Origin: Macrostomum lignano
Taxonomy: Eukaryota
DNA length: 64,000 nucleotides
NCBI GenBank assembly: GCA_002269645.1
Contig: NIVC01001171.1
Coordinates: 83,604 to 147,603, forward strand
Direction: 5' to 3'
In this document: in pieces, positions 26,701-29,700 of the stretch
Position numbering within the stretch: position 1 is the first letter of the stretch
Layout of the letters: each line of letters starts with the position of its first letter
Position numbers and translations under genes: made by a program
The notes under the pieces: generated by a model
Told to the model about the DNA's origin: nothing
Seen by the model: only the letters and a program-made list of their open reading frames with translations
The model's database searches: none

Positions 26701-29700
26701 CACCTAATTTGGTGTAATGAGCGCCTAATTTGTTAAAATGAGCAACTAATTAAATGTAATGAGCGCTTAATTTAGTGTAATTGATGTCACCAAATTAGGC
26801 GCTTATTACAGTAAATTTGATGCTCATTATGAGTGCCTAATTAGGTGAAATGAGTGCCTAATTAGGGGAAATGAGCGCCTGATTTGTGTAATGAGCGCCT
26901 GATTTGTGAAATAAGCGCCTGATTTGTGAAATGAGCGCCTGATTTGTGCAATGAGCGCCTGATTTGTGAAATAAGCGCCTGATTTGTGAAATAAGCGCCT
27001 GATTTGTGTAATGAGCGCCTGATTTGTGAAATAAGCGCCTGATTTGTGAAATGAGCGCCTGATTTGTGCAATGAGCGCCTGATTTGTGAAATAAGCGCCT
27101 GATTTGTGAAATAAGCGCCTGATTTGTGTAATGAGCGCCTGATTTGTGAAATAAGCGCCTGATTTGTGAAATAAGCGCCTGATTTGTGAAATGAGCGCCT
27201 GATTTGTGCAATGAGCGCCTGATTTGTGAAATAAGCGCCTGATTTGTGAAATAAGCGCCTGATTTGTGTAATGAGCGCCTGATTTGTGAAATAAGCGCCT
27301 GATTTGTGAAATAAGCGCCTGATTTGTGAAATGAGCGCCTGATTTGTGCAATGAGCGCCTGATTTGTGAAATAAGCGCCTGATTTGTGAAATAAGCGCCT
27401 GATTTGTGAAATGAGCGCCTGATTTGTGCAATGAGCGCCTGATTTGTGAAATAAGCGCCTGATTTGTGAAATAAGCGCCTGATTTGTGTAATGAGCGCCT
27501 GATTTGTGAAATAAGCGCCTGATTTGTGAAATAAGCGCCTGATTTGTGAAATGAGCGCCTAATTTGTGCAATGAGCGCCTGATTTGTGAAATAAGCGCCT
27601 GATTTGTGAAATAAGCGCCTGATTTGTGTAATGAGCGCCTGATTTGTGAAATGAGAGCTTAATTTGGTGTAATAAGCGCCTAATTTGGTTTCAAAGAGCG
27701 CCTAATTGGGTTTCGGGTGAGCGCCCAGGGGACGCATTGTTAAATTTTGATCAAACGAACTCAGCCCCTACCGTCTCTCTCCTGGTCTCCGAGAACTTGT
27801 CCAGAATCACGCCGGCAATTATGTTCAACAGCAGCACAAATATGATTACAAATGTTGCCATGGTGATAAAGAAGGATGGCAGTAGAAAGTCGAACTCTTT
27901 GATTGGCTCGTTCTTTGGCATGAATACCTGGGGTAGATGAGATTTGAGGTTTGGGCTCTCTGGTAGATTTTACAGCGAAAGCTGACCTCCAGCAACTGAG
28001 CTTCCTTCTGCTTTATTTATCCAAGAATAGTGTGCACTCACGTCAATCCACTTGTCGAAGATGAGGCCCTGTCTTATGAAGCAAACGAAGCACTGGAACA
28101 TGGTCTCACAGTACCAGTTGTCGTCCGAGAACACGTTGTAACGGAAGAAAGCGAAATTGAAAATTGACAGGATGTAGAGCATTAGGAAGGCCATCACCAG
28201 GATTGAGAGCATTGTTGAGGCTGTGGAATTTAGCGCAGGTGGGTAAGCTGCCTGAGCACCTGTGCTCACACTACGAGTCTAAGTTTAAGTACTCATAACT
28301 CCCATTACCGAACCTTGCTCTCATCTACCACATCTACCACATGATAGCTGCTCTCATCTACCACATCTACCAGATGATATCTGCTCTCATCTCCCACATC
28401 TACCAGATGATATCTGCTCTCATCTCCCACATCTACCACATGATAGCTGCTCTCATCTCCCACATCTACCACATGATAGCTGCTCTCATCTCCCACATCT
28501 ACCACATGATAGCTGCTCTCATCTCCCACATCTACCACATGATAGCTGCTCTCATCTCCCACATCTACCACATGATAGCTGCTCTCATCTCCCACATCTA
28601 CCAGATGATATCTGCTCTCATCTCCCACATCTACTACATGATATCTGCTCTTATCTCCCACATCTACCAGATGATATCTGCTCTCATCTCCCACATCTAC
28701 CACATGATAGCTGCTCTCATCTCCCACATCTACCACATGATAGCTGCTCTCATCTCTCACATCTACCACATGATATCTGCTCTCATCTCCCACATCTACC
28801 ACATGATAGCTGCTCTCATCTCCCACATCTACCACATGATAGCTGCTCTCATCTCCCACATCTACCACATGATAGCTGCTCTCATCTCTCACATCTACCA
28901 CATGATATCTGCTCTCATCTCTCACATCTGCCACACTTCCACCACCTACTTTTGCTACTAAAAGCAGAAAGACCCATTATTAAGAGCCAGTTCTCACAGG
29001 CAGACTTCAAAGTGTAAACAACATTCTGCAGAACTACATTGCCAGCAAAGATGTTAATGTGATGGAAGGCGAATAGATAGTAGCCCCAGTTGTCATAGTA
29101 ACCGAAAATCGTGCCCACAACAGACAGGACGAGTAGCAGGCCATAGTAGAAGGTTTCCGGCCCGATGAAGTGCACCTCCAGCCTGTTGATCCGCTTGGCC
29201 TCCGTGTACTCGTCCTGTATCTCGTCGCCGCCGACTTCATCTTGGCCGCCGCGTCCTTTCATGCCCTCGCTTTCGCCTCTGTTTGCTCCGCCGTCCGCTT
29301 CGCCGACATCTACGTCGCTGACGCTATCGTCTTCCTCGGCGTCGGCGCCTGACGACGGTGACGACGTTGTCTTCGACAATTTCAACAGGGTCCATCCGCG
29401 GCAGGTGAAAAGTTTTCTGAGCCCGGCGAGGTTGTTCCAGCCGGGCCGGTTCAGCAGCACGAATGATGCAAATAGGATGGCGCAGACGAAGGAGTGCACC
29501 AGGGCCAGGCCGAATATGGCCGGCCTGAGGTCGCTTTTCACGTCTGGTACGGCGCTGGATTGGATTGAATGCGGATTGAAATTTTTTTGGTGACATCGTC
29601 CCACAACTAGCTCTGAGGCAATTCTGCTCATTCCGCCGCTGAGTCCTGAGCACGTGCAAGCGCGCCAATACTGTACCCAGGCACGCACTCAAACACGCGC

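Follow-up and report, generated by a model that had tools for sequence, protein, structure and literature searches.

Background

Is an ion-channel gene that resembles the inositol 1,4,5-trisphosphate (IP3) receptors (IP3Rs), but lacks the Gly triad of their selectivity filter, a gene that was rewritten on its own or a member of a family without the triad, and what kind of channel would it encode? The question is raised by a locus of Macrostomum lignano on the minus strand of a 64,000-nucleotide stretch of DNA (contig NIVC01001171.1, positions 83,604 to 147,603, assembly GCA_002269645.1), which we call the window and number from its first letter. A first-pass annotation, made from the letters alone, had described two exons of this locus as the pore of an IP3R-like channel with a rewritten filter and gate, and had suggested a relation to a divergent IP3R-B class of invertebrates. 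The gene is Mlig019232.g1, already deposited in GenBank as a hypothetical protein. We found that it is very probably a transcribed, intact and selectively maintained gene, and a lineage-specific, fast-evolving paralogue within the IP3R-B family.

IP3RA, IP3RB and the ryanodine receptors (RyRs) are regarded as the three ancestral bilaterian types of the superfamily. Vertebrates, Drosophila and C. elegans have lost IP3RB, which is described as 'understudied' (Heath-Heckman et al. 2021, PMC7992859).

Results

Gene model and pore junction

By exact spliced mapping, the minus strand of the window from 50631 to 18554 encodes GenBank PAA71334.1 (BOX15_Mlig019232g1; model P0165) residue for residue. 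The protein has 2765 amino acid residues and is encoded by 32 exons, all of them with GT-AG introns, which bears out the earlier description of a full-length open reading frame (ORF). The homologue search with the draft of the whole protein led to UniProt A0A1I8H486, also from M. lignano, whose exons are about 100% identical to the window; the 90% cluster of this entry holds PAA71334.1 together with the copies g3 and g4. At least three intact copies of Mlig019232 are present, and the pore sequence is identical in all.

Exons 28220-28042 and 27927-27772 encode S5, the pore helix, the motif GLIFDKWID and S6 (translation of 28218-28042 and 27927-27772), and the computed translations match those quoted in the first-pass annotation. 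The donor 28042|GTGAGT and the acceptor CCCCAG|27927, which enclose an intron of 114 nucleotides, were the top-scoring in-frame, stop-free GT-AG pair by a clear margin. Alternative donors, alternative acceptors and a micro-exon in this intron were considered and rejected, since this pair scored best, read-through of intron 27 leads to a stop codon, and the sole alternative pair that adds residues requires an intron of 27 nucleotides. Every public model (P0001, P0165, P0166 and P0167) has the identical 28042/27927 junction. The GenBank annotation of the assembly Mlig_3_7 was produced from RNA-seq data with StringTie/TACO and from a de novo transcriptome, not ab initio (Wudarski et al. 2017, PMC5730564); because the GenBank models are derived from RNA-seq, the junction has transcript-level support. 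All transcript-based models use it and splice straight across the intron, in agreement with the earlier statement that no micro-exon restoring GGG lies there.

It is extremely improbable that the annotation or the assembly is in error and that the true mRNA contains another exon or splice site restoring GGGxGD. The read-through frame of the intron does include '...VAGGQ...', and two older, WormBase-derived models in UniProt, A0A1I8H486 (P0001) and P0178, have frame errors and skipped exons, though elsewhere in the gene, outside the pore junction. However, in addition to the stop codon, the 27-nucleotide alternative and the agreement of the transcript-based models, the intron is just 114 nucleotides long and is the same in both g1 and g4, and GGG is missing at the same place in all clade relatives, so that no restoration would be expected.

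Placement in the IP3R/RyR superfamily

The Pfam scan of P0165 gave Ins145_P3_rec (residues 31-223, 7.7e-12), MIR (348-453, 4.7e-11), RYDR_ITPR (592-744, 9e-15), RIH_assoc (1943-2031, 1.9e-17) and Ion_trans (2476-2611, 3e-7), all above the curated cut-offs, and no SPRY or RyR-repeat domain was found among the 2765 residues. The protein thus carries what marks the IP3R/RyR superfamily, namely a beta-trefoil region (Ins145_P3_rec and MIR), RIH/RIH_assoc, a six-helix channel and a C2H2 zinc finger. It does not have the make-up of a ryanodine receptor, which has about 5000 residues, SPRY/RyR repeats and the filter GGGIGDE.

The joined pore peptide of 111 residues matched Pfam Ion_trans (E 2.5e-7) and, in a HMMER search of PDB sequences, IP3R1 (E 3.9e-4) and RyRs. 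In the alignment with IP3R1, GLRSGGGVGD is placed over GLIFDKWID and LNLIFGVIIDTF over the S6 stretch of Mlig019232. With the C-terminal 844 residues, the bit scores were 90 for RyR2, 89 for IP3R2, 85 for IP3R3, 85 for RyR1 and 79 for IP3R1 (E 1e-21 to 1e-25). As these scores are nearly equal, Mlig019232 is equidistant from the solved IP3R1-3 and RyR1-3; the IP3Rs, at 79-89 bits, are no closer to it than the RyRs.

An AlphaFold2 (AF2) model of the fragment from S3 to the zinc finger, computed with a 23-sequence alignment, had a mean predicted local distance difference test (pLDDT) score of 80. In this model, the pore helix (fragment residues 105-118, block pLDDT about 82) is followed by a coil formed by FDKWI, a luminal loop and a 50-residue S6, and the top Foldseek matches were the transmembrane domains of RyR1-3 and IP3R3. 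AF2 with the single sequence was uninformative (pLDDT 53). The pore-helix residues C102 and C108 and the Zn ligands C187, C190, H207 and H212 are invariant in 22 of 22 relatives, in IP3R2 and in RyR2, and all are kept in Mlig019232. The S6 hinge Gly and the Asp and Phe of the D-x-F motif are also present in the alignment, so the elements around the filter are conserved as the first-pass annotation had described.

In comparison with ITPR1-3 (PDB 3JAV, 6DQJ, 12AD), Mlig019232 shares the architecture, the Cys pair, the hinge Gly, D-x-F and the C2H2 zinc finger, as well as the C-terminal '...RAMSL' motif and the second Ca2+-sensor Glu, but it lacks GGGVGD, has Ala in place of the S6 Phe, and is without 6 of the 10 IP3 contacts. 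The region from S3 to S6 and the C-terminal domain (CTD) aligns with RyR1-3 (PDB 5GKY, 8UQ2) over about 235 residues (90 bits); these gave the best Foldseek matches and likewise have no Phe at the site of Ala2597. Mlig019232 is, however, about half their size.

The filter motif in the relatives

We searched 1.84 billion representative proteins exhaustively with HMMER, with the 251-residue RIH_assoc exon as the query; the ranking of relatives is based first on this exon and was then checked on 658 alignment columns. There were 276 matches at E <= 0.001, and the top non-self matches were 33-40% identical. The relatives include BOX15_Mlig033347 and proteins from Pomacea, Octopus, Tubulanus, Patella, Sinanodonta, Dreissena and Capitella, and further ones from Saccoglossus, Branchiostoma, Capsaspora (CAOG_04510) and Salpingoeca. 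In a word-indexed homologue search, the index of which misses relatives at 35% identity, the pore and CTD peptide gave no match, a 9-sequence alignment gave self-copies only, and the full draft protein gave itself and two distant protist proteins.

In an alignment of 37 sequences, the Gly triad is missing in every animal member of the clade and in the Capsaspora protein, and GGG[LIV]G[DE] is kept in more distant holozoan and protist homologues. The nearest group (Tubulanus, Octopus, Pomacea, Mlig033347, P0005 and P0019) has R[YF]GLIGD[LM]F[DE]. Relative to this motif, GLIFDKWID has F for G, K for L and W for F; one residue is inserted, and neither Asp has been lost. GLIFDKWID very probably derives from the spiralian IP3R-B motif GLIGDLF[DE], and the missing GGGxGD is a trait inherited from the IP3R-B family and not a rewrite of one gene.

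The earlier claim of a full-length IP3R-like protein without GGGxGD therefore holds, with GLIFDKWID at the site where IP3R-A has the canonical filter GGGVGD, but the claim that the filter was rewritten in this gene was overstated, because all animal and Capsaspora members of the clade are without the triad. The first-pass annotation had itself named, as a point that would speak against it, the same filter being typical of a characterised clade. This applies in part: a named clade does typically lack GGGxGD, as observed in the sequences aligned here, but the function of its members has hardly been characterised, and GLIFDKWID in this exact form is unique to Mlig019232.

Two of the relatives had features of their own. 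The pore of P0026 (Branchiostoma belcheri KAI8488683.1) contains two successive segments of loop and S6, ...GLRIVFGMIVDAFVALRNKK... and then ...GLRLIFGIVVGGFVSLRNKK..., and looks like a tandemly duplicated S6 exon, probably mutually exclusive, of which both copies were annotated as included. P0005, among the closest non-Macrostomum relatives, is an uninterrupted 2.5-kb ORF from RIH_assoc to the C-terminus (L002/L003, Logan SRR23372229 and SRR23372228, 1001-3502), the start of which is overlapped by an adjacent upstream gene call of 1116 residues.

Phylogenetic position

In the neighbour-joining (NJ) tree of the 658 columns, the GLIGD subclade that includes Mlig019232 had a bootstrap value of 83%, the bilaterian non-GGG clade 89%, and the wider non-GGG clade 93%. 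These nested clades hold Tubulanus, Octopus, Pomacea, Mlig033347, Patella, Dreissena, Sinanodonta, Capitella, Saccoglossus and Branchiostoma. Capsaspora CAOG_04510, which is distinct from CO.IP3R-A and is also without GGGxGD, adjoins the clade. The terminal branch of Mlig019232 is 0.97 long, compared with 0.27-0.56 in the relatives. In a second NJ tree, of 155 columns, for which the IP3R2 and RyR2 sequences were copied from PDB alignments and one IP3R-A sequence was included, IP3R2 and RyR2 fell outside the assemblage of Mlig019232 with moderate support. Mlig019232 thus did not group with IP3R-A: IP3R2 lies outside its clade, and its HMMER scores to IP3R1-3 and RyR1-3 are equal.

The clade is monophyletic in the 658-column tree, and we equated it with the published IP3RB by shared species; it includes proteins of Capitella, Saccoglossus and a limpet, that is, species used for IP3RB in PMC7992859. 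The two trees, together with the equal distance from IP3R-A and RyR, support the earlier guess of a divergent IP3R-B class. The IP3R-B family is said to have been defined by Alzayady et al. in 2015 (Mol Biol Evol 32:2236), and the Capsaspora IP3R-B reportedly neither bound IP3 nor released Ca2+ in that study.

Changes in the gating core

The identity between Mlig019232 and four close relatives was compared, region by region, with the identity among those relatives. It was 32% versus 42% in RIH_assoc, 31% versus 37% in S1-S4, 28% versus 35% in the pore helix and filter, 20% versus 63% in the S4-S5 linker and S5, 38% versus 68% in S6, and 43% versus 64% in the zinc finger and CTD. Because the gaps are largest in the S4-S5 linker with S5 and in S6, the excess change is concentrated in the gating elements and not in the filter, which is variable throughout the family.

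There are 38 near-invariant positions in the channel core, that is, positions conserved in at least 20 of the 22 relatives. Mlig019232 keeps 26 of them, including the Cys pair, G116, the hinge G163, D167, F169, R173 and the four Zn ligands, and deviates at 12. In the S4-S5 linker, T62K and N64A turn T-x-N (in VTxNG) into K-S-A; T-x-N is also present in IP3R2 and RyR2, and positions 62 and 64 are conserved in 21 and 20 of the 22 relatives, respectively, unlike in Mlig019232. Further deviations are F149T in S6, T168K beside the S6 Asp, L172T, and LL for FI in the zinc-finger CxxC; L44H, S67T, L68M, L74M and I164V make up the remainder.

In IP3R, the S6 Phe forms the upper hydrophobic constriction. 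The corresponding site, Ala2597 in Mlig019232, is occupied by Phe in IP3R-A and in most IP3R-B and protist relatives, by Leu in a few, and by Gln in RyR; at the next constriction position of S6, Mlig019232 has Leu, versus Ile in IP3R and RyR. The earlier statement that the gate Phe is replaced by Ala is correct for the IP3R site, but this Phe is not conserved across the superfamily.

Mlig019232 resembles other IP3R-B proteins in its IP3R-like size and domain order, the lack of SPRY/RyR repeats and of GGGxGD, the loss of most IP3 contacts, and Asp for Glu at the first Ca2+-sensor site. It differs from them in GLIFDKWID (versus GLIGDLF[DE]) and in the changes at 12 of the 38 core positions. The features specific to it are Ala for the S6 Phe, the lost T-x-N of the S4-S5 linker, Lys for Thr after the S6 Asp, and a branch about three times as long. 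The paralogue Mlig033347 (PAA86874.1 / PAA93573.1), from the same species and the same spiralian GLIGD subclade, has the same architecture in its C-terminal half, but retains RFGLIGDLFD, GLNIIFGIIVDTFSELR, the S4-S5 linker motif VTMNG and the zinc-finger motif CFIC, and it is only about 32-35% identical to Mlig019232 over the C-terminal region.

Ligand and Ca2+-sensor sites

Bosanac et al. in 2002 reportedly described ten IP3 contacts in IP3R1, namely R265, T266, T267, G268, R269, K508, R511, Y567, R568 and K569. When Mlig019232 was aligned with the solved IP3R N-termini by HMMER, HLRLRPMD was placed over FLRTTxRQ, KQKMMR over RQKLMR, and GRSSKN, gapped by three positions after GRS, over SQEDYRKN. 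Four of the ten contacts have a conserved equivalent (R265, K508, R511 and K569) and six do not (T266, T267, G268, R269, Y567 and R568), so that the canonical set is incomplete.

The gene could nevertheless encode a bona fide IP3-gated receptor, functionally equivalent to IP3R-A and with a merely unusual pore, and the four conserved contacts and the presence of the N-terminal Ins145_P3_rec and MIR domains agree with this. We regard it as quite unlikely, given the six lost contacts, the form HLR[LV]R, which is common to the whole non-IP3R-A group retrieved, and the tree, in which Mlig019232 is not grouped with IP3R2.

The role of the acidic Ca2+-sensor Glu in IP3R and RyR is documented (PMC9522344). 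In the ARM3 region of Mlig019232, the first sensor site reads QMC-D-GQF, with Asp for Glu as in all bilaterian clade members. The second reads TLN-E-VAAG, with the Glu kept; this residue, E2007, does not vary across alignment A1. The Ca2+ site is completed by a Thr of the post-S6 linker, and this Thr appears from the alignment to be retained (NDLT).

Selection and gene copies

We compared g1 with the copy g4 (L001, NIVC01000946.1) and found 44 synonymous and 13 nonsynonymous differences, which correspond to a synonymous divergence (dS) of 0.024, a nonsynonymous divergence (dN) of 0.0020 and a dN/dS of 0.083; the aligned introns differ by 2.0%. Because dN/dS is this low while introns and synonymous sites diverge by about 2%, the gene is under purifying selection, as an expressed gene and not a pseudogene. 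Except for one synonymous site at residue 2756, all coding differences lie within residues 386-2460.

It is accordingly very improbable that Mlig019232 is a recent, redundant duplicate of the conventional IP3R-B gene Mlig033347 that is drifting towards a pseudogene. Its very long terminal branch and the many unique substitutions at conserved sites could be read in this way, and the M. lignano genome is highly duplicated (PMC5730564). But the ORF of 2765 residues is intact over 32 exons with canonical introns and in at least three copies, transcript-derived models exist, and dN/dS is 0.083. Moreover, the identity to Mlig033347 of only about 32-35% points to an old duplication, since which the ORF has been preserved.

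The divergence between g1 and g4 is a mosaic, about 0-0.7% in introns 1-8 and 26-29 and about 1.7-8% in introns 9-25. This suggests that gene conversion took place between g1 and g4, or that their 5' and 3' parts were collapsed or joined as chimeras in the assembly.

Coordinates and surroundings of the gene

The positions of the gene and of the elements discussed are given in Table 1.

Table 1. Features of the window (all on the minus strand)
Feature	Position	Strand	Basis or remark
Mlig019232.g1, whole coding sequence	18554..50631	-	32 exons, 2765 residues, TAA stop after 18554; spliced mapping of P0165 = PAA71334.1
IP3-binding-core equivalent, including GRSSKN	44174..46627	-	HMMER alignment to solved IP3R N-terminal regions
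ARM3/RIH_assoc segment with two acidic Ca2+-sensor positions	32721..32906	-	alignment
S4-S5 linker, most of it (last residues in exon 27)	28998..29040	-	alignment to relatives
Exon 27: end of S4-S5 linker, S5, pore helix, filter-equivalent segment	28042..28220	-	
Pore helix, residues 2535-2553, with two pan-family Cys	28060..28116	-	AF2 and alignment
Filter-equivalent GLIFDKWID, residues 2551-2559	28042..28068	-	alignments; FDKWI coil in AF2
Intron 27, 114 nucleotides, GTGAGT...CCCCAG	27928..28041	-	same in g4 copy; without micro-exon
Exon 28: luminal loop and S6	27772..27927	-	
S6 helix, residues 2571-2610	27775..27894	-	alignments and AF2
Ala2597, codon GCC	27814..27816	-	alignments to IP3R, RyR and relatives
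C2H2 zinc finger CLLC...H...H of the post-S6 linker domain, residues 2622-2647, exon 29	26209..26286	-	alignment
Cys-loop ligand-gated channel gene nested in intron 30 (4.85 kb), separate from the IP3R-B protein	21239..22789	-	Pfam

The nested gene is complete (Pfam Neur_chan_LBD 1.6e-41, Neur_chan_memb 1.6e-23) and on the same strand as its host; the g4 copy has the same nested gene call, of 477 residues (L001 33935-35368). On the plus strand from 53000 to 64000, cadherin repeats follow one another over a long distance (Pfam Cadherin 3.4e-62; there is also a weak N-terminal match to FAT4-like sequence). They belong to a large protocadherin/FAT-like gene, which is convergent with the 5' end of the IP3R-B gene and extends past the window.

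Most introns of Mlig019232 (24473-50467) bear a long tandem array of their own. There are 4-nucleotide repeats in 66-213 copies at 48757-49608, 44390-45199, 41684-41949 and 40545-40955, and in other introns minisatellites of 12-40 nucleotides, such as a 17-mer repeated 95 times at 24473-26090. The array lengths differ strongly between g1 and g4 (7 kb of indels).

The older models contain an error of frame in exon 3 (49744-49615), omit exon 17 (39558-39374), are mis-spliced in the S1 region and are truncated at the C-terminus; P0178, labelled 'ANK_REP_REGION domain-containing', is a frameshifted copy of Mlig019232. The public models show two 3' ends. In the g1 and g4 models, two further small exons (19443-19369 and 18604-18554) follow a splice at 24294. 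The g3 model passes through the donor at 24294 and ends at 24264, either because the intron is retained or because an alternative terminal exon with a polyadenylation site of its own is used.

Discussion

The best explanation as a whole, that Mlig019232 is an IP3R-B protein that works as a channel, has in our estimate a probability of roughly 60%. The full mechanism, namely a Ca2+-sensitive tetrameric endomembrane channel that is not gated by IP3 and has an altered pore, is a tentative proposal from sequence and has somewhat less than an even chance. In it we infer tetramerisation, location in the endoplasmic reticulum, Ca2+ regulation, the lack of IP3 gating and altered selectivity. Most likely, Mlig019232 would form a tetrameric endomembrane channel, alone or with the more conventional paralogue Mlig033347. 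The loss of six of the ten IP3 contacts makes gating by IP3 improbable, and the ability to sense cytosolic Ca2+ has probably persisted, because the zinc finger, D-x-F, the hinge Gly and the Asp, Glu and Thr of the sensor positions are still in place.

The conduction path would be unlike that of IP3R-A and RyR, with a short loop after the pore helix that carries Asp-Lys...Asp and the bulky Phe and Trp. The small Ala at the upper S6 constriction may leave the Leu at the position of the Ile gate as the hydrophobic gate, and the S4-S5 linker is presumably remodelled. From the filter loop, the S6 Ala and the S4-S5 features combined, weaker selectivity for divalent cations and an altered coupling of the cytosolic domains to the gate are predicted.

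The same protein may instead be a non-conducting pseudo-channel, in which the IP3R-like cytosolic part and the membrane anchor were preserved and ion passage was lost. It would then serve as a scaffold, regulate by binding Ca2+, or enter heteromers with Mlig033347 as a dominant modulatory subunit. We consider this unlikely, although it keeps an appreciable chance. The excess divergence lies in the S4-S5 linker, S5, S6 and the post-S6 linker, with RIH_assoc only slightly accelerated; near-invariant residues, among them T-x-N and the S6 Phe F149, have been replaced, and the filter loop contains Lys and the bulky Phe and Trp. In the 2015 study of Alzayady and co-workers, the Capsaspora IP3R-B reportedly gave no Ca2+ release. 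On the other hand, Mlig019232 has preserved the six-helix core, the Cys pair, R173, D-x-F with the hinge Gly, and the zinc finger, and its AF2 model shows an ordinary pore domain of the RyR/IP3R type. The reading as a channel is favoured because this structural core of the pore, the hinge, the zinc finger and the two acidic residues of the filter loop are retained.

A stronger version, that Mlig019232 is a neofunctionalised IP3R-B descendant in which conduction or coupling was re-engineered, so that permeation would be qualitatively unlike that of any characterised IP3R or RyR, or the gating trigger would be different, is improbable in our judgement. It would rest on the Asp-Lys/Trp loop, the S6 Ala, a putative ring of Lys below the S6 Asp and the absence of T-x-N. 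If it were true, the protein might be, for example, a monovalent-preferring or constitutively leaky channel, and a natural handle on the function of the IP3R-B pore.

Several observations weigh against the preferred explanation of a conducting, IP3-independent IP3R-B channel. Divergence is heaviest in the most conserved gating elements (20% versus 63% in the S4-S5 linker and S5, 38% versus 68% in S6, 12 of 38 core positions changed), and this fits relaxed constraint as well as new gating. The pore exons and flanking introns of g1 and g4 are near-identical, as is the whole 3' third of the two copies, introns included, so the dN/dS value informs on residues 386-2460 and not on the pore. R265, K508 and R511, classically essential for IP3 binding, are all retained, and such binding may therefore persist. 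The label IP3R-B comes from shared species, not from matched accessions. Finally, the IP3R-B family may not conduct at all, since its one member studied in this respect, that of Capsaspora, reportedly neither bound IP3 nor released Ca2+ (Alzayady et al. 2015).

Conclusion

What is truly unusual in Mlig019232 is the Ala in S6, the loss of the S4-S5 motif and the acceleration of the gating core; the lack of the Gly triad is shared by its family. Within the IP3R/RyR superfamily, IP3R-B forms a third and ancient branch. Its animal members have in common a pore loop without the Gly triad that marks all characterised Ca2+-release channels, and this raises the question of what, if anything, they conduct. 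M. lignano supports transgenesis, and RNA interference and in situ hybridisation are routine in this species. As it has a conventional and a highly derived IP3R-B gene together, a comparative functional test is practical.

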